This document shows, piece by piece, positions 47,020 to 64,000 of a stretch of 64,000 nucleotides of DNA. Origin of the DNA: Bugula neritina. Lineage: Eukaryota > Animalia > Bryozoa. How positions within the stretch are numbered: the first letter of the stretch is position 1; each line of letters begins with the position of its first letter. Below the pieces are notes generated by a model, which saw only the letters and a program-made list of their open reading frames with translations, was not told the origin of the DNA and searched no databases. The stretch covers positions 10,570,633-10,634,632 of the forward strand of contig OZ037769.1 in NCBI GenBank assembly GCA_964035545.1. The letters run 5' to 3'. Both the position numbers and the translations under genes were made by a program.

Positions 47020-50000
47020 TTACAGTGTAGCTTCTTCCCATTCCATAATTTTACGTACTTTACTCATTGTGTTGTAGAAACTCTCTTCTAGTAAAGCTTT
47101 CTCCAACTCCTTCTTCTGTTTTCGCTTTCTGTAAATAAAAAAAAGAACATTATTATTAAATTGTAGTTATGAAGAAGAAACTAAGAAGGTTATAGTAGTG
47201 GCCTTTGAACAGTTGACATTCATTTATTATGCCCCAGGCCTGTCGGAGTTTGAAAAATGCTTAAAGCAATACCAAGTTGCCTAGACATAAGGGGCAGTAC
47301 CCTGATGAAGATAGTGTGGTCTTTTACTATTCAGTCTTTCTATTTTACAGTTGACAGGTTATCTCCTTCACCATATAACATGCAGCTAAAATAATACAGT
47401 GCCCCCTCCATAATTCATCGTTCTATTTCTCACGAAACTCAAGAAGTAACAAGAATGGCTTGGACCCCCGTTTTGTGGCTCATGTATGTGTTTATAGGGA
47501 CAAAATAGCAAAGTTTAACTGATCTCTGAGTTGAATCTGGTATTCTACTATGTCAAGGACACAAGGTTTGGGACTGAAGCTTAGTGAGACACGGAGGAAG
47601 CAGTGTATAGCTATTTGCTATGAAGTGTAGAAATTTAATTTTTTGAATAATTATTACTAAAATGTTGGACTCTCAGTTTAAAACAGTTTTTGGCTTTAAG
47701 TTGAAAACCAAGTTTTGACACTTAGAATAATGCAGTCACTCTTGAGTTATTCAAGTTGCGTTTCATTGGTTGACTCAAACTTTACACTAATAAAGCAAGG
47801 ATTGACAGATTGTGCTTGGTATCAAACAGTCCTCTACTTTTCTACGCAATCCTAATTCTGTATACATTATCATGTGCCACAGAGTTGGAAAAGGTACTTG
47901 TTAACACTGAGTATTCAACATAAACTAGCTATACACATGGAGTAAGCTCCAGTGTCAACTGCTAATAGAGTCACTGCAAGGGGAAGGATCTCATAAACAG
48001 GCAGCAGGCAATTGCTCATAGTGCACTACTAGTCAACACCCTGGATTTATACTAGCCAATGAAAAAGCTGAACAGCCTTTCTAATGTTTCTGCCAGTTTT
48101 AACCTTGATTTTTCAAAAGCTGCTTTTGGCATGAGTTTTAATCGAAAGTATAATATACTAAATAGGAATGGTGTGTATTAATCAACCAGACAGAAATACT
48201 TTAGAGGCTATAGGAGTGTTTTGATTTTGAAGAAAGATTTGAATGCAACCTATGAAACCGTTATAACTTGTTGCATCCTCAGTATTTAATCACAGTTTAG
48301 AAAATTTGTTTATACATACAGGCTGTCAAATATTAAAATATAATATGAGTTTGATATGTCATCATATACTGTATAGAAGACACACTGTAATATTATATAA
48401 TATAGTGTAATACAGTATAGTAAAGTGTCAAGTTTAACAGAATGCTAACCTTCTATAGCGAGCATAAGAAACAGAAGAGATGACTATCACGGTAAGCAAA
48501 ACTACGGCTGCTCCTATAGATATCCACACTGGTAAGGGTAGTAGACCTGGGAACAGAAAACACAAAGGCCTACCACTCACAGGTAATGCTTGCAAAACAT
48601 TCAACACAATAAATACAATTACGTGTTGGAAGATATACATTAAAACAATTAGTAACAACATGTGATATATGTAAATGCTGAAATTCAGGAAGTATAAGCT
48701 TTTCCATACTCACTGTTTGTGTTTTGCACCTGCTGCTTTTTGTCCATGCTGCTGGTCTGTTTAAACGTGTATACATGAGTTGTTGATGCTGTGGAGGTGT
48801 TTTTGTTAAATTTTTGGACTGATGATTTAGGTAAAGCTGTTTGAATGGTAGATAATATTGTTGTTTGCAAACGTTTGGTTGTTATTGTTGGTGTTGTAGT
48901 TGGTGTTGTTGTCGGTGTTGTTGTTGGTGTTGTGGTTGGTGTTGTTGTTGGTGTTGTTGTTGGCATTGTTGTTGGTGTTGTGGTTGGTGTTGTTGTTGGT
49001 GTTGTAGTTGGTGTTGTTGTCGGTGTTGTCGTTGGTGTTGTGGTTGGTGTTGTTGTCGGTGTTGTTGTTGATGTTGTGGTTGGTGTTGTCGTTGGTGTTG
49101 TAGTTGGTATTGTTGTTGGTGTTGTCATTGGTGTTGTGGTTGGTGTTGTTGTCGGTGTTGTCGTTGGTGTTGTAGTTGGTGTTGTTGTTAGTGTTGTAGT
49201 TGGTGTTGTCGTTGGTGTTGTCGTTGGTGTTGTCGTCGGTGTTGTCGTTGGCATTGTTGTTGGCGTTGTTGTTGGCGTTGTTGTTGGTGTTGTCGTTGGT
49301 GTTGTTGTCGGTGTTGTCGTTGGTGTTGTTGTTGATGTTGTAGTTGGTGTTGTAGTTGGTGTTGTTGTTGGTGTTGTAGTTGGTGTTGTAGTTGGTGTTG
49401 TTGTTAGTGTTGTAGTTGGTGTTGTCGTTGGTGTTGTCGTTGGTGTTGTCGTTGGTGTTGTCGTTGGTGTTGTTGTTGGCGTTGTTGTTGGCATTGTTGT
49501 TGGCGTTGTTGTTGGTGTTGTCGTTGGTGTTGTTGTCGGTGTTGTCGTTGGTGTTGTTGTTGATGTTGTAGTTGGTGTTGTTGTTGGTGTTGTAGTTGGT
49601 GTTGTAGTTGGTGTTGTTGTTGGTGTTGTTGTTGGTGTTGTTGTTGGTGTTGTCGTTGGTGTTGTCGTTGGTGTTGTCGTTGGTGTTGTTGTTGGCGTTG
49701 TTGTTGGCGTTGCTGTTGGTGTTGTTGTTGGTGTTGTGGTTGGTGTTGTTGTCGGTGTTGTTGTTGGCGTTGTCGTTGGTGTTGTCGTTGCTGTTGTTGT
49801 TGGCGTTGTTGTTGGCGTTGTTGTTGGTGTTGTCGTTGGTGTTGTTGTCGGTGTTGTCGTTGGTGTTGTTGTTGATGTTGTAGTTGGTGTTGTAGTTGGT
49901 GTTGTGGTTGGTGTTGTTGTCGGTGTTGTGGTTGGTGTTGTCGTTGTTGGTGGAATTAGTGTTGCATTCAAAACCAGGGCAAAGCCCTTTGCACCTGGAA

Positions 50001-51959: not shown

Positions 51960-54879
51960 GGTGGATAATTTCGGCGTGAGAGAACTTGAAATGTGCAGTT
52001 GAGAAATAGTTAAGTTAGGAGACTATAGAGTTATCATGTGAAGAGAGTGCTGAAAAGACTATTCTATCTATAATATCTACTTCTGCCTACTTAGTGTTAC
52101 ACACTGATGCTTTAAAAAGAGTGTTTTTGGTTGGCCTGATAACGTTTATGATTGTTTGTTAATTGTTTTACAATATATTAGTGATTTCAATGAGGAAAGT
52201 ATAACTGATATAATCTGCAAAGATATTAGTGAATAATTTATTTTTATCTTTTGGTCAAATACGAAGCTGGAAAAACATATTAAATATGGTTATTATAATA
52301 GAATAGCAGGGATGAAACTGAAAACAGTTCTCTGTTTATATAATATTTACATAGTAGGCTGCGTGCTATGTAAGAAAGTATTAGGAATAAGTAATGATTT
52401 TGCATTTAAGAATAGACACAGTTTCATAATTTCAACAATTACGAGTAACAGCATGCACCAAAAACATTGAAAGGCAAGTTCATGCACTTCTTTTCTGTCA
52501 TGAACCAAAACCTTTGTCAGTGTTTAATTCTAACTTTTAACATTCTGTTTGAAAATTGAACTTAATTCTACTTTAATCTTCATTGTCATGATGAGTACAA
52601 CTAACATTGAACTTAAAAAGTTTTACAGATTTACTGATTCTCTATTTTGCAACCTCGGCCTTGGTAATTCATACACAAAGAATGACTAATTTATTTCAAT
52701 GATAAGCAAACATTCTTCAAGTCTGAAATTCTGTTTGTTCTTTGTAGAATGTTATCTTGCAACTTTTAAATTCTTTTCGTATTACTTTGCACATTGAAGA
52801 TGTCCTCGTTTTACCAGATAGTTCCGATCAAATAAATATCTAAATAGCCACAAGTTGTTCCTGTACATCTTTGCATGTGGTAATTCTATGCAAGAATTAA
52901 CACTCTTTCTATCTAAAAGATACAGAGTAGCACAAACTCTCTTGCTTTGTACGTCATGTGACCTCTTAGCATACCTATAAGCTGCTGTTTGCTTGATATT
53001 TTAGAATTACTGTCTTTGTTATTAGACCAAACACAGCAAAGTACCTACTTATCAGTTAGTATGATGGTTGATGAACTGTTCTCAACAAAATTCTGTTAGC
53101 TGATGCTTGTATCTCATTGGCCTAATTATGGATTTTGTATTTTAATTTGCAGTTTTATATATAAGTTATAATGGTGACATTTTAGAGTTGGTACACAACC
53201 CTGATTGGCTGAGTTTTTATAGTCTATTGTTTAGCCTACAGTTGAACTGTTGGAAATTTCATGATCTCATATGATTCTTTGCTGCTGTACGGATTACTCA
53301 CTGTCTTATTTAATCAAGATGATGCCTTGAGGTGCAGTGTTGAGTTTACCCAGTAGCCCCTGTGGTGTAATGGTGTAATAAGATCTACATACTATAATTT
53401 AATCCGAATCGGTGGGTGGCCTCTACTCAGGCACTTTGAGATACATTTCTTCACTATTGGCCTGCAGGGTTCAGTCTAACGGAGTATCATCCCTAACAAC
53501 TGGGACCATTCTTGGATGATAGTTCAGACATCTTTTTGAAGGTTCTGTGCAATACTCTTAACTGAACAGTATTAATTATATAAAGCTTGATTGATTATTC
53601 ATCAAAATATACCTCTTTTCATACAAAAAGAAAAATCGGACAACAATCAAAATATATTAATTGGTCGGCAATGGCTTCAATGCTTTCTTGTAAACACCTT
53701 ATTGGATAGCAATTTCATTCAAGAATTTTCGCTTATGCTGATTATCCTTGATATAACCACAAAATAATTTTAAAAATGTTGAACTATCGTAAGTTTATGT
53801 TGAGGCTGCAGCTCAAACATAAAATTATGACTATTATACATTTTTAAAATTATTTTGTGACATCAGGCATTTCTAGATTTATTTTGTCACTTTTAGCTAT
53901 TTATGTTTATTTTTCTCAACTGTACTAAATTATTATTAGCAATAAATTAATAATAATAATATTATATAAATAATGGCCTCCCCAGCTTATATGGAGGTAG
54001 AAAAATGGGAATTTATGCTCCTTATAAAAAAACAACTAGTCTCTATAATAATGGTTATGTTAATTTTTGCAATACTCTGGTAGCAGCTTTCCACTTCAGT
54101 AATTTGAGCTAATTAGTGTAGTATTGAGCTTATAGGGAACTAAGAAAGTTGACAACTAAATTTCTATATTATTTTGATGACTGACATTAGATTAGCAAAT
54201 CCTAGCATCTAATGGGCATCCAAAGCAATATTTTTAAAGAGCTGTGTAGCAGTGATCTGAACAGAATGTCAATTTCTGATTTTAAAGAGATTTTTCGAAG
54301 GGAGATATAAATTTTTGAACTTGATTAGCAAGAATAATGCGCTACAAAACATCACTACTACATGAAACTTTAGATACTTGTAACTCTAAATATGAAAGAT
54401 ATACTATCTTGTAGTTACATCCCCTGCTGATACTGGACTTTGGAGTTGCGTATACAGGTTAAGTAATTATAGAATAAGTAAAATGATTCATCTTCTGCTG
54501 TCAATAGATATCACACAGCTTGCAGGAACAAGTTATTCACAATATTTCAACTCAACTCTGATTCATCAACCAAAGTCTTCTTTCTCAGAATGAGTTAATG
54601 GGTCTTGTGATAAATAGTGTAATTTAAAGTACTATTTGCAATCAATAAAGGAAAATAGAAGTCGTTGTATTATAGGCAAGATCATCGAAAAGATCATATA
54701 GTATATATTAGTAGTGCCATATTATAGTAGCATATATTAACAGTGCCATTTAGTATAATATAATATCAGTAATTGCATTTGTTTATAACTGGTTATTATT
54801 CTATATATGCAAGAGCAACAACATCTGCTGAATAATAGGTGGTATGGTAGGTAATTAGCAGGTGGATGCTGGTAGGTGG

Positions 54880-54955
54880 ATGGTAGGTGAGTGGTAGGTG
54901 AGTGGTAGGTGAGTGGTAGGTGAGTGGTAGGTGAGTGGTAGGTGAGTGGTAGGTA
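54880..54955. repeat. 11-bp tandem repeat (ggtaggtgagt)n
   Basis: About 6.5 copies; a degenerate counterpart lies at ~60320-60460. Confidence 0.85.
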
Positions 54956-56484
54956 TTGTAGGTAGTTAGTAGCTGAAAAGTTTATCCAAGCAGGTCAAAA
55001 CTGTACTGAATAAATATCATTATAAGTTTAAATCTCAACCCAAGTTCCTGCTTCATATCAACAGATTTAAACCTTTTCGCATATATTTTTATGCAGCAGT
55101 GCATAAGCAATAGAAATGGTAAAGTACATCCTGCCAGGTTCATGTGGTATAACAAATTCTGACATTGTGGAATTTTAGAGTTAATTTTGTTACAGAGTGT
55201 GCTCTTGCATTACAAGCTACACCTAAACCCATACGCATTTCAATTCATCGTGTTGACCCAAATTTATTCATAAAGTAAGCTGAATATTTTTATGTAGCTT
55301 GAAGGTTTCTTTTCTTTATTCAACAAGGCTGAAGATGGTGTTTCCTTCAAGTGCATGGTTGTTCAAAGGTTGAATAATTTAGAACTTTGATGATGATTGA
55401 CAGGTGTCTGTCAGAGATAACAACAAATTTTGAGTCTTTCAGCTAGACAACTTCAGCACATGCAGCGTGAATACGTCCACTGGGACATTACTCTCATGTG
55501 TCAGCTTGCATTACACAGTATTGTTATAAAGAGGTGTTTGCTGCTTAAGGTGTTTGTTTCTATAGACAGAGTCTCCTTTAAGGTCTAGTGTTTAGAGCAC
55601 TGTTCTTAACTCACCAACTGCTGTTTACTGTGACAAGAGATTATTGACAGGCACTGGTGGCCAAAGCTCTGGTGCAGTGATTTGGTGTGAATTTGAAGAT
55701 CACTTTCTCATAACACAGCATAGAATGACTCCCTTTTAAACTATTACTATACTGTTGGTAGGTTAGTTGTGTCAGTTTATTTTCTTTGCAGACCTTTGCA
55801 CTTGGCTTACTTCTCAAAATATATTTTACTTTTGCTCTGAAGTTGTCTTTTTAAAGTCCTTGGAGAGTGATTTTGGGTAATTACTTCCCCTTGATTAATA
55901 AATCACTATTTGCAATTACAATTTTGAGTTGTCTGTCCTTTGAAGAGGTGTCTCTGTCCCATATGTAACATGATACTAGACTGTTACTGTGCATTCATAT
56001 TAATTCAAACTGAAGTAACCATATTATTTTGGCTGATTGAATAAAAGCAATTGTAAAAGTTCTGGTGTTTTAATAAGCTTGTGTAGAATATAGCAGTACC
56101 ACGTGTCCAACATAATATGACTCATCGATTCATATATATTATTACTATTATTATTATGACATATAAATAAATGACACTTACTAACATATCAGCATGTATT
56201 AACCCGTTTCTTACATAAATAGACTGAATGTTGTAAAATTCAAAAATTCATATTTATCTTTATTTTGTAATTTTTCATTACATTTTTTCAAGTATAAATA
56301 AATCAAGCAAGCAACATGCCCAAAGTTTGTAAAACTCATGCTAATTCACAGCTTCCAATGAAAATGTTGAAATTGGTATACTCCATTACGTCAAGATTTA
56401 AGAGCCAGATCCTTACACATGTAAAAATTACAGTTTAATTTAGAAATGTCAATATACAAAGTTTCTTCTAAGCATATTTGCAGG

Positions 56485-58985
56485 TTAACTACTATTCAGC
56501 AGTTGCAGTATGTTTTTAGAAAGCCTCTTGATTTCATTCCTGTCTTGTGGCGTGAGGGCCTTCACATTCTGATCATGACAGAGAGGATTTCTTATTCTTA
56601 CTATGCCCTTTATCATGCCATTGACGTCGCTAGGAAGCTGGTCTTGCACCGAGTATCTCAATTGACCTTCAAAGCAGAGTATAAACATTTTATGTGTAAA
56701 TCGAGACTTTTAGTTTCAGCTAAAAATGGCACATGTAAAGTTAAGAACATACTGACACCCCTTGTAAAATATTTACAACCCACACCCTCTATAAACAATC
56801 TACTATCCACACCCCCTATAGAATATCTCCTACCCACACCTTGTGCCAGGGAGAAAATCCTGGCTCTTTGCCAAAATTTGAATAAAAAATATGTTAGCTT
56901 TTTGCAGCTTGTTCAGCTATTTTGTTGGCTTTTTGGTTATGTTATTTTTAATGTATTAGAAATATTAGCAATTCACTTGCCAGGAAGACGCTATAAAGAG
57001 CTGATGTTTGTAAGTAGAATTATAATTTTGAAGTTTTATGTTTTTGTTGATGTTATTTGAAGTTTACTTATGTATGTATTTTTGTGCAGTATGTAATTAT
57101 TTGTTGATATTTTAATAGAGTACAAGACCATGAGTAAATAAAATTCAAAGATTAAGAAAGTATTGCTCGATGCTTGTTGCTAGCCAACTCGATAAGCCAT
57201 TCCTGGCACACACCTCCTGTAGAATATCTACTATACCCACACCCCCTGTAGATTATCTACTACCTAAACACCCCCTGTAGAATATATATTACCTAAACTA
57301 CCAGCAATAGAATATTATGAAGTGGACAGATGTGCCTATTTATTATAATTTGGAATATATTTCCATAAACATTTTAATAGTAGATTAGATAATATGATAC
57401 TTATTGGGATATATTGAGCCCCTTTAATATATAATAAAAATAAAAAGATAAAGATAAAAAAAATTTCAAACAAATTTTGGCAATTTGAAATTTAAGTCAA
57501 GACTGAACTTGATTTCTCACTCAAACATCTCTAAGCGAAGAATAGAAGAAAAAAAATTGTTTCAATTCTCCCCAGACAGTTTGAAATAGTTGAATCCTTT
57601 CAGTGATATTTTAGTACTGCAAGTCTTAGTTGTAGCACTTGTTGGGGGGGTCAGGGTCAAGGCTAAGTGTTAGTTATATAGATATAGCCATCCAGTTGGA
57701 GCTACAGACAATCTACACTCTACAGACAAAAGAACTAAACTTTCTCATTTAAAAAAACAAAAAGTAAAACTGCGTATACATTTCATAATCACATAAATGC
57801 TGGCATTGGCAATAATTAGTGAAAAATCTTTTGTTAGGCATCAGCTAGTCACAGACTTCATAACAATGAGGGAGAAATAAATCAGTTGGACTAGCCAACA
57901 ATATTCTAGACTCTAGAGTCTAGATCATGGGGGGAGTAGATACGGCCCTCGAGCTATATTTATGTGGCCCCCAAGGTATAGCAAGTTACAGAAGTTTTTT
58001 CATCAAATTTGCCAACTAGCCTGTAACAGCAGCACATAGGGTAGTTGAGAGCATCCTCACTAAGAATAATATCATAAATGTCCCTCAAAATGTAGTTTAG
58101 GTTCTTGTATAATATTGCTCTGTGGATGACAAGCGTGTTGCCTACTTGTCATTGTTTAGCCTGAGATCAAACAACAACCAACAAACAGCAACAGGGCTGC
58201 ATCATTTACCAACATTCCATTGTGAATGCCCCATAAACAAAGTATACAGCCAGCTAGTCATTATAGCCTGTTTATATCTATAGTTATATACAGGCTATAC
58301 TAGCTACACGAGTTATACAGGCTATACAAACAGGGGTCTGAAATTGTTCACAAGGAATTTTTACAGTGAAACAGCATAGTTCTCACTTCAGTCAGAAACT
58401 AACTAAACTCTAGAGTGAGGACATGAGATACACTAAAGCTACAAGGGGTGCTCAACTGGAGGTCTCAGAACTACATACATGTGCTCTGCAACTATAAAAT
58501 TCTGACATCCATTAAAAAGTTTCAGAAAGAACTTTTATCTGCTTGTATAGAATACCAGACAGCCAAACTAAATATGCATTATTTGAAACAGATACGAAAA
58601 TAGCTTTCCATTATGTTTAACAGAACAATTCTTTTAGTAGACCAGCTCCTTTTGCTTTCAGTTAACTAGCAAACTGTTAAAAAAGTTGAACTCAAGGCAA
58701 ATGACAAACAGAACCATGTATACAGTATTTACCTAAACCCTCTCCCTCAGCTCCATATCTAGTTTTAAGAAGCACCTCCAGCTTCTTGCTGATTGTGATG
58801 ACTAGTTCGTAGTCATTGGGGAGATACTGGTTCTGTGCTGGTGGAGATGGTGCTGGTGCTGGTGCTGGTGCTGGTGCTGGTGGTCGTGGAGCTACCGGTC
58901 TGCCATATCCTGCAGGTTGACCTGTGAACCTGTAGTTGTCAGCATGATCATTGTAATCATCAGGTGACCTAAAGCAGTTCCCCAT
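56485..58985 (-). CDS. 144-aa protein: MGNC N-terminus, Pro/Ala linker, HEPN (DUF4145-like) domain; copy 1
   Basis: Exons 58985-58733 and 56666-56485 (phase 1, G|GTAAAT...TTTGAAG|GT). Domain NDYELVITISKKLEVLLKTRYGAEGEGLGQLRYSVQDQLPSDVNGMIKGIVRIRNPLCHD has an RNxxxH motif. Gene structure is well supported; the domain call is by motif recognition. Confidence 0.8.
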
Positions 58986-59152
58986 CACGGCTAGCCTCTT
59001 CTATTGTGAGTTCTAGAAGCTACTAGTGCTAGTACTGGTGCCCTCTATCCTGTAAGCAATGCTACATTGTCATCACTACTAACATGTCAAATAAACTTGG
59101 CATAAGCAGCCAATATTTCATCGCAGTGCTAGATATTTGCCGTGAGTGAAGG

Positions 59153-59162
59153 GGGAATTCCC
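59153..59162. promoter_or_regulatory. Candidate NF-kB/Rel site GGGAATTCCC
   Basis: Perfect palindromic match to GGGRNWYYCC, ~170 bp upstream of the ATG at 58985; CCAAT nearby at ~59110. Confidence 0.5.
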
Positions 59163-59981
59163 ACTTCATATGCAGATTATAGAGGTCGCCACAAAACCTA
59201 ATAAGCTAACATATTAGTTTGTGGTTAGTTAACGCATGCAGCAAACAGTTTATATGCAATTTTTATGGGCTAATAGAGAGAGCTTGCGGAAGTATCAATA
59301 TTATCTATTTCAATGATGAACCAAACAATAATTTCATAAATAAACTATGAGTTTGTGCTTTGTTGAATGCACCCATCAATCACACCAAAAGCATACTAAT
59401 GCCAAGTTATCTTTATAACTCAGTAAATGAGTAAATCATGGACTAGGAGTTGCGTCTGCAGTAAAGCTGTATAGTAATAATTTCATAAATAAACTGCACT
59501 AGTAATAGCATTGTCAGGAACTGCACGTGATTTGTAGAAAACAGGCTACCGTGAAATTACTCTGTGAATCAAAAAGCAAGTCACCAACTATTTATTCATA
59601 CTTCAAATAAACATGGCCTCTGCAGTGACATTCATTCTCTCCTTGGCTGCATGGATGTGAGTTCAGCTCCATCAACACATCTTCAGTCACTATTACTATA
59701 AAATGACTTTACAAAATCGTTTATAAGAAATATAATATGTGTGAAATTAGGAGATATAGGTTCTTAGACCATGCAAAAGGAAAAAATATATCCCTGATGT
59801 CAGCAAAGCCATCTTGTAAACCTTGTAAACACACCAGTATAGCTAGCTACAAGTATACTTGTAAGCTGCACTTCATGTTTGTTTTAGACTTGCCCTAACT
59901 GTGGTAAGTAAAGTGCAAGAGTCATGACTAATGCAGCCACTATGTGGAAGTTATGTAAAGCCAATCAGCTATTCTCATATA

Positions 59982-60216
59982 GTTTCCGGTAAAAATGGCT
60001 CTGGTAAAATTGGTACCGGTAAAAATGGTACAGATAATAACGGCAGAAATGGCAAAGTAGGTAGAAATGACACATTATTAATATGGGTGGGTAGGGGGTT
60101 TTCGGATTTGGGGTTAATTAGGAAAATTTAACATCAGTGTGCCATTTTTACCTACTTTTCCATTTGTGCCGTTATTACCTGTGCCATTTTTACCTGTGCC
60201 ATTTTTACCTAGAAGC
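59982..60216. mobile_element. Foldback-type MITE with TIRs built from 15-bp ggtaaaaatggcaca repeats
   Basis: Left ggtaaaaatggc repeats and right tgccatttttacc repeats, TA/TATA flanks. A degraded inverted partial copy lies at ~60648-60800. Confidence 0.75.
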
Positions 60217-61562
60217 TATATGTATAGATAGTGCTAGTATCATATATAATAGTAAAGGAATTTGTTTATAACTGGTTATTTTTTATAATTGAGCAACAAC
60301 TTTTGCTAAATACTTATTGGGTATTGTAGGTAATATAGTAGGTAATTAATAGGTGTAACCAGTAGGTTTTGTAGATAGTTAGCCAGTATTGTAGATAATT
60401 AGTAGGTGGGTGGTAGGTATCGTAGGTGATTATAGCAGGTATCGTAAGTGATTAGTAGGTTAAAAGTTTCCCTCAAGCAGCTCAAAACTGTGCTGAATAA
60501 ATCTCATTATAAGTTAAAGTCTCAACCCAACTTCCTGTTTATTCAACTGACAATATACTGGCTTCAAACCCTTTTACATATTATATTATACGGCAGTGCA
60601 TAAGCAATAGAAATAGTAAATTATCCTGTCAGGCTCATGCTGTATAACAGGTGAAATTGGCAAAGCAAAAATGGCATGTAATAATAACACAGGTAATAAT
60701 AGCACAATGTAAAAATACACTATAAGGTAAATTTGGCAAACTGATGTTAAATTTTCCCAAAGCTCAACCAAAAACCCAACCCAAAAAACCCCAAACCTAT
60801 TTGAAGATCACTTTCTTATAACAGCATAGAATGACTCTTTTTACACTATTACTATATTATTGGTAGGTTAGTTGTGTCAGTTTATTTTCTTTGCAGACCT
60901 TTGCACTTGGCTTACGTCTCAAAACATATTTTACTTTTGCTCTGATGTTGTCTTTTTAAAGGCCTTGGGAGTGATTTTGGGTAATTACTTCCCCTTTATT
61001 AATAAAACACTCTTTGCAAATATAATATTGAGTTGTCTGTCCTTTGAAGAGGTGTCTCTGTCCCATATGTAACATGATACTAGACTGTTACTGTGCATTC
61101 ATATTGATTCAAACTGAAGTAACCATATTATTTTGGCTGATTGAATAAAAATCAATTGTAAAAGTTCTGGTGTTTGAATAAGTTTGTGTAGAATGTAGCA
61201 GTATCACGCGTCCAACATAGTATGACTCATTGATTCATACATATTATTATTATTATGACATATAAATAAATGACACTTACTAACATATCAGCATGTATTA
61301 ACCCGTTTCTTACATAAATAGACTGAATGTTGTAAAATTCAATAATTCATATTTATCTTTATTTTGTAATTTTTCATTGTATTTTTCAATTTTAAATAAA
61401 TCAAGCAAGCAACATGCCCAAAGTTTGTAAAACTCATGCTAATTCACAGCTTCCAATGAAAATGTTAAAATTGGTATACTCCATAGATCCTTACACATGT
61501 AAAAATTACAGTTTATTTTAGAAATGTCAATATACAAAGTTTCTTCTAAGCATATTTGCAGG

Positions 61563-64000
61563 TTAACTACTATTCAGCAGTTGCAGTATGTTTTTAGAAA
61601 GCCTCTTGATTTCATTCCTGTCTTGTGGCGTGAGGGCCTTCACATTCTGATCATGACAGAGAGGATTTCTTATTCTTACTATGCCCTTTATCATGCCATT
61701 GACGTCGCTAGGAAGCTGGTCTTGCACCGAGTATCTCAATTGACCTTCAAAGCAGAGTATAAACATTTTATGTGTAAATCGAGACTTTTAGTTTCAGCTA
61801 AAAATGGCACATGTAAAGTTAAGAACATACTGACACCCCTTGTAAAATATTTACAACCCACACCCTCTATAAACAATCTACTATCCACACCCCCTATAGA
61901 ATATCTCCTACCCACACCTTGTGCCAGGGAGAAAATCCTGGCTCTTTGCCAAAATTTGAATAAAAAATATGTTAGCTTTTTGCAGCTTGTTCAGCTATTT
62001 GTTAGCTTTTTGGTTATGTTATTTTTAATGTATTAGAAGTATTAGCAGTTCACTTGCCAGGAAGGCGCTATAAAGAGCTGATGTTTGTAAGTAGAATTAT
62101 AATTTTGAAGTTTTATGTTTTTGTTGATGTTATTTGAAGTTTACTTATGTATGTATTTTTGTGCAGTATGTAGTTATTTTTTGATATTTTAATAGAGTAC
62201 AAGACAACGAGTAAATAAAATTCAAAGATTAAGAAAGTATTGCTCGATGCTTGTTGCTAGCCAACTCGATAAGCCATTCCTGGCACACACCCCCTGTAGA
62301 TTATCTACTACCCACACCCCCTGTAGATTATCTACTACCTAAACACCCCCTGTAGAATATATATTACTTAAACTACCAGCAATAGAATATTATGAAGTGG
62401 ACAGATGTGCCTATTTATTATAATGAAGTATATCTCCATAAACATTTTAATAGTAGATTAGATAATATGATACTTATTGGAATATATTGAGCCCTTTTAA
62501 TATATAATAAAGATAAAAAGATAAAGATAAAAACAATTTCAAACAAATTTTGGCAATTTGAAATTTAAGTCAGGACTGAACTTGATTTCTCACTCAAACA
62601 TCTCTAAGCGAAGAATAGAAGAAAAAAAATTGTTTCAATTCTCCCCAGACAGTTTGAAATAGTTGAATCCTTTCAGTGATATTTTAGTACTGCAAGTCTT
62701 AGTTGTAGCACTTGTTGGGGGGTTAGGGTCAAGGCTAAGTGTTAGTTATATAGATATAGCCATCCAGTTGGAGCTACAGACAATCTACACTCTACAGACA
62801 AAAGAACTAAACTTTCTCATTTAAAAAAACAAAAAGTAAAACTGTGTATACATTTCATAATCACATAAATGCTTGCATTGGCAATAATTAGTGAAAAATC
62901 TTTTGTTAGGCATCAGCTAGTCACAGACTTTAAAACAATGAGGGAGAAATAAATCAGTTGGACTAGCCAACAATATTCTAGACCTAGAGTCTAGATCATG
63001 GGGGGAGTAGATACGGCCCTCGAGCTATATTTATGTGCTCCCAAGGTATAGCAAGCTACAGAAGTTTTTTCATCAAATTTGCCAACTAGCCTGTAACAGC
63101 AGCACATAGGATAGTTGAGAGCATCCTCACTACGAATAATATCATAAATGTCCCTCAAAATGTAGTTTAGGTTCTTGTATAATATTGCTCTGTGGGTGAC
63201 AGGCGTGTTGTCTACTTGTCATTGTTTAGCCTGAGATCAAACAACAACCAACGAACAGCAACAGGGCTGCATCATTTACCAACATTCCATTGTAAATGCC
63301 CCATAAACAAAGTATACAGCAAGCTAGTCATTATAGCCTGTTTATAGCTATAGTTATATACAGGCTATACTAGCTACACGAGTTATACAAGTTATACAAA
63401 CAGGGGTCTGAAATTGTTCACAAGGAATTTTTTACAGTGAAACAGCATAGTTCTCACTTCAGTCAGAAACTGACTAGACTCGAGAGTCTAGAGTGAGGCC
63501 ACGAGATACACTAAAGCTACAAGGGGTGCTCAACTGGAGGTCTCGGAACTACATACATGTGCTCTGCAGCTATAAAATTCTGAAATTCATTAAAAAGTTT
63601 CAGAAAGAACTTTTATCTGCTTGTATAGAATACCAGACAACCAAACTAAATATGCATTATTTGAAAAAGATACCAAAATGGCTTTCCAATATGTTAAAAA
63701 AAACAATTTTTTTAGTAGATCAGCTCCTTTTGCTTTCAGTTAACTAGCAAACTGTTAAAAAAGTTGAACTCAAGGCAAATGACAAACAGAACCATGTATA
63801 CAGTATTTACCTAAACCCTCTCCCTTTGCGCCATATCTTGTTCTAAGAAGCACCTCCAGCTTCTTGCTGATTGTGATGACTAGTTCGTAGTCATTGTGGA
63901 GATACTGGTTCTGTGCTGCTGGTGCTGGTGCTGGTGCTGGTGCTGGTGGTGCTGGTGGTGCTGGTGGTCGTGAAGCTACTGGTCTGCCATATCCTGCAGG
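61563..64000 (-). CDS. HEPN (DUF4145-like) protein, copy 2; 5' end lies beyond the window
   Basis: Exons >64000-63811 and 61744-61563. Exon 2 encodes the same peptide as copy 1; exon 1 reads PAGYGRPVASRPPAPPAPPAPAPAPAPAAQNQYLHNDYELVITISKKLEVLLRTRYGAKGEGL. Confidence 0.8.

Follow-up and report, generated by a model that had tools for sequence, protein, structure and literature searches.

What kind of protein does the small split gene near one end of the window encode, and what is its ancestry? The window is the whole 64,000-nucleotide stretch of Bugula neritina DNA analysed here, G000:C5:10570633-10634632 of a 216-Mb genome. The gene, called copy A below, is a real, tandemly duplicated two-exon gene. 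The HEPN fold and family placement of its product are well supported by structure prediction, structural matches and conserved motif residues, and we regard them as highly probable. We also consider it rather likely that the product is a membrane-tethered, dimeric, metal-independent endoribonuclease acting on RNA at the cytosolic membrane face.

The earlier note on this DNA proposed that two short minus-strand open reading frames (ORFs), spliced over an intron of ~2 kb, give a protein of 144 amino acids. Its coordinates proved exact, with GT/AG splice sites and phase 1. In window numbering, copy A consists of the following parts.

Copy A exon 1, coding part: 58733..58985, minus strand; MGNCFRS start, (PA)n linker, HEPN helix 1 (NDYELVITISKKLEVLLKTRYGAEGEGLG) and a phase-1 GT donor.
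Copy A intron: 56667..58732, minus strand; 2066 nt, GT..AG, with a short interspersed nuclear element (SINE)-like repeat (about 58035-58260) and 27-29-nt tandem repeats inside.
Copy A exon 2, coding part including the stop: 56485..56666, minus strand; HEPN helices 2-4, with RNPLCH (the Rx4H motif) closing helix 3.

Translation starts from the ATG at 58985, and a low-complexity (PA)n tract lies between MGNCFRS and NDYELVITISKKLEVLLKTRYGAEGEGLG, which holds the family-invariant Glu. The donor, TAG/GTAAAT, directly follows position 58733, and a polypyrimidine tract and AG stand just before 56666, where the reading frame resumes as (G)QLRYSVQDQLPSDVNGMIKGIVRIRNPLCHDQNVKALTPQDRNEIKRLSKNILQLLNSS and runs to the stop codon (56487-56485). 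The phase-1 junction (G/GT) encodes Gly. Together, 253 + 182 nt make 145 codons with the stop, yielding a 144-residue protein with the C-terminus LLNSS. The closest named database protein is Bugula neritina EB796_015012 (P0002, 128 residues), which spans the two exons of its locus, the exon break following GEGLG; in Watersipora subatra, the RefSeq model XP_067934203 (P0018) has an intron at the same codon as the window gene.

The HEPN assignment made earlier was supported by modeling of P0002, which yielded a four-helix bundle whose structural matches are mostly HEPN domains and in which RNxxxH and the upstream Glu are conserved. AlphaFold2 modeled residues 36-128 of P0002, with 138 relatives aligned, at a predicted local distance difference test score (pLDDT) of 95.3 and a predicted template modeling score (pTM) of 0.86. 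The helices of this model span residues 7-26, 33-39, 46-64 and 73-92, and RNxxxH closes helix 3. In an exhaustive structural search with VIA-align, about 20 of the top 25 rows were HEPN-superfamily domains. The best match was the HEPN protein 2hsb (Z 9.7, root-mean-square deviation (rmsd) 2.2, 91 of 93 residues aligned); since a VIA Z under about 13 is possible for any helical bundle, the argument rests on the enrichment. Other matches included Roquin, the SO_3166 HEPN toxin, HepS, DrrA/GlnE, the sacsin HEPN domain, TT1696, MtlR/YggD, Csm6 and AbiA. Foldseek searches of the PDB with two models returned no match at an E-value of 0.001 or below, and the best-fitting rows, at template modeling scores of about 0.5-0.6, were HEPN domains. 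The structural neighbors in the ESM Atlas were ApeA, HEPN and HepT clusters.

At the sequence level, phmmer with P0002:36-128 over 1.84 billion representatives retrieved 186 proteins at E ≤ 1e-3, and only 4 of the 151 library relatives listed among them lack RNxxxH. The helix-1 Glu is invariant in the 138-domain alignment, and conservation there reaches at least 90% at the L, A, G, G and L positions in the loop '(F/Y)GAxGxGL'. The invariance of R, N and H in this alignment follows from the choice of rows; that of the Glu does not. RNPLCH, an Rx4H motif with a polar residue after R, is present in both copy A and copy B, the neighboring duplicate.

The proposed likeness to DUF4145 fared less clearly: DUF4145 is the nearest profile family, but the match is borderline. 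P0002 scores 13.4-14.4 bits (E 0.04-0.08), below the 23.1-bit gathering threshold of Pfam, and aligns to model positions 16-82 of 88; its HEPN_Swt1 match is also sub-threshold, and a Pfam scan of each window exon alone gave no match. Among the 138 relatives, 30 match DUF4145 at E ≤ 0.01 (best, 5.5e-5), and fewer match HEPN_Apea, RiboL-PSP-HEPN, HepT-like, HEPN_Swt1, Cthe2314 or HEPN. In UniRef, several members from oomycetes and diatoms bear the name 'DUF4145 domain-containing protein'. Searching PDB sequences with a profile gave nine weak matches; six were HEPN proteins whose alignment falls on the motif (four CRISPR-associated chains, HepS, Csm6 and a HepN-family toxin). PADLOC and NCBIfam held no family for P0002 or nine relatives, save one weak REase_III match.

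A dimer model was among the checks suggested in the earlier note, and a symmetric homodimer is predicted for P0002 (0.48 versus 0.00 for the best control), with the motif His at the modeled interface. Of proteins with solved structures, 21 of 30 pairs and none of 23 single chains reach the mark used (17 of 29 versus 0 of 30 for eukaryotes). Three runs agree in at least 95% of contacts, and the pLDDT of the partner is at least 89. The predicted interface comprises residues 6-20, 31-32 and 62-66 of P0002:36-128, including Glu19, Gly31-Leu32 and His64.

Two architectures recur in the wider family. In architecture (a), the HEPN domain starts at residue 1 and is followed by at least one C-terminal transmembrane helix; the named or placeable examples are bacterial. 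The two bacterial contexts of this type (one in Thermoguttaceae, the other a contig with RuBisCO and PrmA genes) have housekeeping neighbors and no defense island. Some proteins carry repeated domains: P0004 (Thermoguttaceae) has two HEPN copies and a transmembrane helix, P0005 matches in four stretches, and P0024 (625 residues) has 11 RN(I/T)EEH motifs, most of them 53 residues apart. Architecture (b), found in 116 eukaryotic proteins, consists of an MGxxxS/T start, a short linker, the HEPN domain and a C-terminal CaaX box. Its members come from oomycetes (Phytophthora, Aphanomyces, Saprolegnia, Achlya and Peronospora), diatoms, Nannochloropsis, Synchroma, green algae, a cryptophyte, the chytrid Globomyces and the ichthyosporean Amoebidium. 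Several are transcriptome-derived, and the ESM Atlas adds a haptophyte cluster. Among the best 120 rows of each search, the bryozoans Bugula and Watersipora are the only animals with the family. A literature search, with subscription journals outside its coverage, found no paper tying HEPN or DUF4145 to myristoylation, prenylation or CaaX and no mention of four family locus tags. A large family of putatively lipid-tagged eukaryotic HEPN proteins has apparently gone undescribed.

The lipidation start proposed for the window protein agrees with the consensus in one copy and departs from it in the other. On the N-myristoylation consensus M-G-{EDRKHPFYW}-x-x-[STAGCN]-{P}, copy B (MGNCFGS) fits, but Arg6 places copy A (MGNCFRS) outside; P0002 (MGNCFGP) departs from it at position 7. 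Because Arg at position 6 is atypical for N-myristoyltransferase substrates, lipidation of copy A appears less certain than that of copy B. Among the 116 eukaryotic proteins of architecture (b), the N-myristoylation consensus is present in 100, a CxxX end in 114, both in 98 and RNxxxH in all 116. The last CaaX residue in the eukaryotic relatives is mostly S, M or C, residues that predict farnesylation by the specificity of prenyltransferases. The window gene has no CaaX box, ending in LLNSS; CaaX boxes occur in two paralogues of the same genome (CVIS and CNIS) and in Watersipora P0308 (CLIC). Among the bryozoan genes, those with CaaX lack Cys in residues 1-9, and those without it have Cys at positions 3-7: MGNCF in copies A and B, MGCF in P0018, and MGNTGSC and MGNSCC in a pair on contig C4. 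Small as the count is, this pattern fits maintenance of a two-signal membrane anchor, with palmitate replacing farnesyl. The window genes have also gained a Pro/Ala-rich linker of about 50 residues. The lipid modifications named here are predicted from consensus signals.

Copy A belongs to a tandem array with a unit of ~5.07 kb, and a profile search of the whole genome found seven family loci, three on C5 and four on C4. The array and the C4 pairs are laid out as follows.

Tandem unit A: 56000..61077; ~5.07 kb.
Tandem unit B: 61104..64000; 94-95% identical to unit A, continuing past the window, where the degraded unit C comes next.
Tail of an older degraded unit: 54751-55973; precedes unit A in window numbering.
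Copy B exon 2, coding part: 61563..61744, minus strand; identical to copy A exon 2.
Copy B exon 1, 3' part: 63811..64000, minus strand; the exon runs beyond the window to about 64069 in window numbering.
Copy C, third unit: G000:C5:10636785-10645252, 2.6 kb beyond the window end; degraded.
C4 head-to-head pair: C4:2606-2610 kb.
C4 tandem pair: C4:2665.8-2670.6 kb.

That at least two copies are intact, as the earlier note had it, is confirmed for A and B once exon 1 of copy B is read in the genome past the window end; this exon is intact, and its PA repeat is 6 nt longer. Exon 2 together with 40 nt on either side is identical in the two copies (262/262), despite an overall difference of 5-6% between the units, which points to gene conversion or constraint. 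Copy C has a frameshift in exon 1 from a 34-nt deletion in the PA repeat, has lost the exon 2 stop codon, and carries two insertions that swell its intron to about 6 kb; judged by these lesions, it is a pseudogene in this assembly.

At all seven loci the protein starts with MGN and a phase-1 intron follows the GxGLG/GxGFG codon; RNxxxH is kept at six of them. The C4:2669810-2670640 paralogue has an MGNSSS start, a GCVIS end and RNKLVH. Its tandem neighbor (L031; C4:2665400-2666300, its exon 1 at C4:2667688-2667876) retains an MGN start and a CaaX box (CNIS), but KHSLTH replaces RNxxxH; beside the canonical RNKLVH/CVIS copy, it may be an inactive partner.

The array and its surroundings show further features. 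The SINE-like interspersed repeat of ~230 nt lies at 58035-58260 in the intron of copy A and at 63105-63330 in copy B. It has 702 first-look candidates in the genome; the 40 that were scored are ~82% identical, and its contig depth is very high in both public runs. The 27-29-nt tandem repeats (ACACCCCCTATAAAATATCTACTACCC) lie at 56755-56840 and 57210-57298 in copy A and at 61833-61918 and 62284-62373 in copy B, flanking a segment of ~400 nt. This segment is skipped in related-strain contigs (joint 56834 to 57239), pointing to an insertion polymorphism or a small mobile element inside the intron. On the plus strand, ORFs at 56446-57060 (204 residues) and 61524-62036 (170 residues) run antisense over exon 2 into the intron of both copies; they are probably a by-product of opposite-strand constraint and chance. 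Farther away, an 89-copy array of a 12-nt unit (TTGGTGTTGTTG) at 48875-49946 accounts for the extreme GC and AT skew of the 48-50 kb bin. A symbiont or contaminant origin of the genes was rejected on the basis of their spliceosomal introns and their location on 17.7-Mb and 24.8-Mb contigs among animal repeats.

The sole public RNA-labeled run with any of the window stretch is a 2016 'symbiont metagenome' RNA-seq library, available as contigs only and from a relative ~90% identical. Its contigs cover exon 2 (56420-56653), exon 1 (58731-58833) and intronic repeats; depth is zero in the bins of unique intron sequence. Such coverage fits a spliced mRNA in the sibling strain and does not prove it. 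No contig of this run crosses the 58733/56666 junction, so splicing is neither shown nor excluded by it; one low-depth contig extends 42 nt into the intron, and the run may hold DNA. For selection, the ratio of non-synonymous to synonymous substitution rates (dN/dS) between copy A and the B. neritina gene is 0.38, with domain codons counted exon by exon. The synonymous divergence (dS) between the window copies and this orthologue (L023, GCA_010799875.2) is about 0.25, with intron identity of 82-87%; therefore, the window genome belongs to another member of the Bugula neritina complex, or else these loci are paralogues.

The relationships of the family were assessed with quick trees. Watersipora P0308 (MGNESS...CLIC) is sister to the Amoebidium protein, with support of 96 in the Shimodaira-Hasegawa-like approximate likelihood ratio test (SH-aLRT) and 53% identity, and the two have in common a three-residue insert ahead of 'LP'. 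By their termini, P0308 and the C4:2669810-2670640 paralogue look to be keepers of the ancestral double signal. The window-type proteins P0002 and P0018 lie on very long branches, and their free placement is unsupported. When P0002, P0018, P0308 and the Amoebidium protein were held as one clade, the tree was 29.4 log-likelihood units better than the free quick tree, with a p value of 0.89 in the approximately unbiased test (p-AU), although two long branches may attract each other. Because of this fit and the common intron, the data favor inheritance within Holozoa, with the gene lost from most animals, or at most its transfer from one eukaryote to another. The window gene would then be a rapidly evolving offshoot, confined to bryozoans, of an ancient eukaryotic family of mini-HEPN proteins with two lipid anchors (N-myristoyl and C-farnesyl); the bacterial relatives of this family carry transmembrane helices as anchors. 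This offshoot would have lost the farnesyl signal and gained N-terminal cysteines, seemingly keeping a second anchor.

HEPN ribonucleases (RNases) are central to bacterial immunity (Cas13, Csm6, toxin-antitoxin systems, Abi and RAZR) and include animal RNase L and Ire1. Several known systems resemble the window protein in part. HepT (a Type VII toxin of the MNT-HEPN pair) and HepS are likewise small dimeric HEPN RNases, and their structures match the model (5yep, Z 8.9; 9oik (HepS), Z 8.2, rmsd 2.2; 7ae2, Z 7.8); in contrast, the window protein is the product of a eukaryotic gene with no operon and no MNT antitoxin-like neighbor seen, and its sequence matches to them are weak. In the antiphage RNase RAZR of bacteria, a DUF4145 HEPN domain was shown by experiment to cleave single-stranded RNA and to require both R and H (PMC13017515). 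The window protein shares the four-helix HEPN fold and the R...H motif with DUF4145 (PF13643) and RAZR, whose domain has a dimer-type active site (PMC13017515). It differs from RAZR in having neither a zinc-finger sensor nor a defense-island context, in being eukaryotic, intron-bearing and, by prediction, lipid-tagged, and in motif spacing (R146...H154 in RAZR versus Rx4H). DUF4145 domains that are soluble or fused to restriction or helicase modules contrast with the window protein and its predicted lipid tags.

Membrane association has precedents. Bacterial membrane-associated HEPN proteins have a cytoplasmic N-terminal domain tethered to the membrane and are proposed to process RNA at its inner face (PMC3710099, Anantharaman et al. 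2013). The bacterial type (a) relatives match this layout, with the domain at residue 1 and C-terminal transmembrane helices, whereas the eukaryotic clade has N-myristoyl and CaaX signals in place of the transmembrane helix. In text searches of that paper, DUF4145 appeared for bacteria, archaea and dsDNA viruses alone, and 'myristoyl' was absent. The same paper describes Ire1 and C6orf70 as membrane HEPN proteins and the activity of Ire1 and RNase L as dimerization-dependent (PMC3710099). Unlike the bare ~90-residue domain of the window protein, Ire1, RNase L and C6orf70 are large and multidomain, with sensor, kinase or transmembrane parts, and no sequence-level relationship to them beyond the superfamily was seen.

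We propose the following mode of action, which we hold to be rather likely. Each unit would encode a ~144-residue protein made up of an N-terminal lipidation signal, a Pro/Ala-rich leash of ~50 residues and a four-helix HEPN domain of ~90 residues. Gly2 would take myristate and Cys4 palmitate. The HEPN domain probably pairs as a symmetric dimer, in which the Rx4H His, the helix-1 Glu and the GxGL loop of both chains meet at the interface. HEPN endoribonucleases have a composite, metal-independent active site at the dimer interface, and such a site on a membrane tether would lead to cleavage of single-stranded RNA at the cytosolic face of the membrane. Residue conservation and the analogy with the DUF4145 HEPN domain of RAZR make catalysis the reading toward which we lean.

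Several points weigh against this proposal. The full-length fold and search work used the database orthologue P0002 (80-86% identical) and drew also on the database proteins P0018 and P0308, in place of the joined product of the window, whose exons were searched singly. The structural Z values, the Foldseek E-values and the DUF4145 scores are modest, as described above, and the model behind the dimer score may have memorized solved HEPN dimers. The splice junction was not seen in the RNA-labeled contigs, one of which enters the intron, and copy A carries the atypical Arg6. Moreover, we know of no partner, inhibitor or trigger, which puts in question how a constitutive dimeric RNase would be tolerated. 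The same concern bears on a rival explanation, to which we assign a minor though real probability: the protein would have the HEPN fold without cleaving RNA and would serve as a membrane-bound adaptor that binds RNA or protein, a role proposed for motif-less HEPN domains such as MtlR. A small constitutive RNase with no known inhibitor would be risky for a cell, and the paralogue with KHxxxH for RNxxxH still has an open frame and a CaaX box. What speaks for an endoribonuclease over an adaptor is that R, N, H and the helix-1 Glu are near-invariant over bacterial and eukaryotic members at 30-40% identity, the pattern of a catalytic site, and that the motif residues fall at the interface of the predicted dimer.

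Two further rivals concern the gene itself. The window copies might be decaying, untranscribed duplicates, with only the conserved CaaX paralogues on C4 being functional. The unseen junction, the broken copy C, the long branches with dN/dS of 0.38-0.65 and the departure of copy A from the myristoylation consensus would all agree with decay. However, in copies A and B the reading frame is open, the start codon and the two splice sites are in place, and every motif residue is kept; their exon 2 and flanks are identical over 262 nt in units 5-6% apart; the B. neritina orthologue, at dS of about 0.25, is intact; and RNA-labeled contigs lie on both exons. We therefore hold decay to be improbable. 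Less probable still, and in our view quite unlikely, is a recent transfer of a bacterial HEPN gene into bryozoans with later domestication, as the earlier note had suggested. Bacterial proteins are among the top non-bryozoan pairwise matches of the Bugula domain: the tandem-HEPN protein of Thermoguttaceae reaches E 1.4e-14, and forms with transmembrane anchors are 40-44% identical. In free trees the Bugula row is placed among transmembrane-type rows, and bryozoans are the only animals in the best-ranking rows. Yet the Thermoguttaceae score is a sum over two domains, and the branch of the Bugula row is very long (3.1), its position having no starred support. The better fit of the holozoan-constrained tree, the P0308-Amoebidium sister pair with its insert, and the eukaryote-wide clade with an MG start and CaaX also speak against the transfer, as do the same phase-1 intron and MG start at 7/7 loci, two of which carry the eukaryotic CaaX.

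If the endoribonuclease reading of copy A and its relatives holds, their biological role is a matter of speculation. Lineage-specific expansion, tandem duplication, pseudogenization, fast evolution and variable linkers might speak for a role in conflict or immunity, and membrane clustering might, speculatively, substitute for a sensor domain. A broader scenario, which we put forward tentatively, is that membrane-pinned, two-lipid mini-HEPN RNases occur throughout eukaryotes, arose from transmembrane-anchored bacterial HEPN proteins by an anchor swap, and act as defense or stress effectors at membrane surfaces, for example against membrane-replicating RNA; bryozoans would have expanded the family and exchanged farnesyl for palmitate on a long flexible leash. 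To our knowledge, the known eukaryotic HEPN RNases are all large and sensor-bearing. If true, a bare HEPN domain with two lipidation signals, conserved in groups as far apart as oomycetes, algae, an ichthyosporean and bryozoans, would represent a novel and simple means of restricting an RNase to the surface of a membrane. The family would, in addition, present a clear anchor swap on one catalytic module, from a transmembrane helix to myristoyl plus farnesyl and then to myristoyl plus palmitoyl. A function found in one member would annotate many proteins, including those of crop and fish pathogens (Phytophthora, Aphanomyces and Saprolegnia) and of major algal groups.

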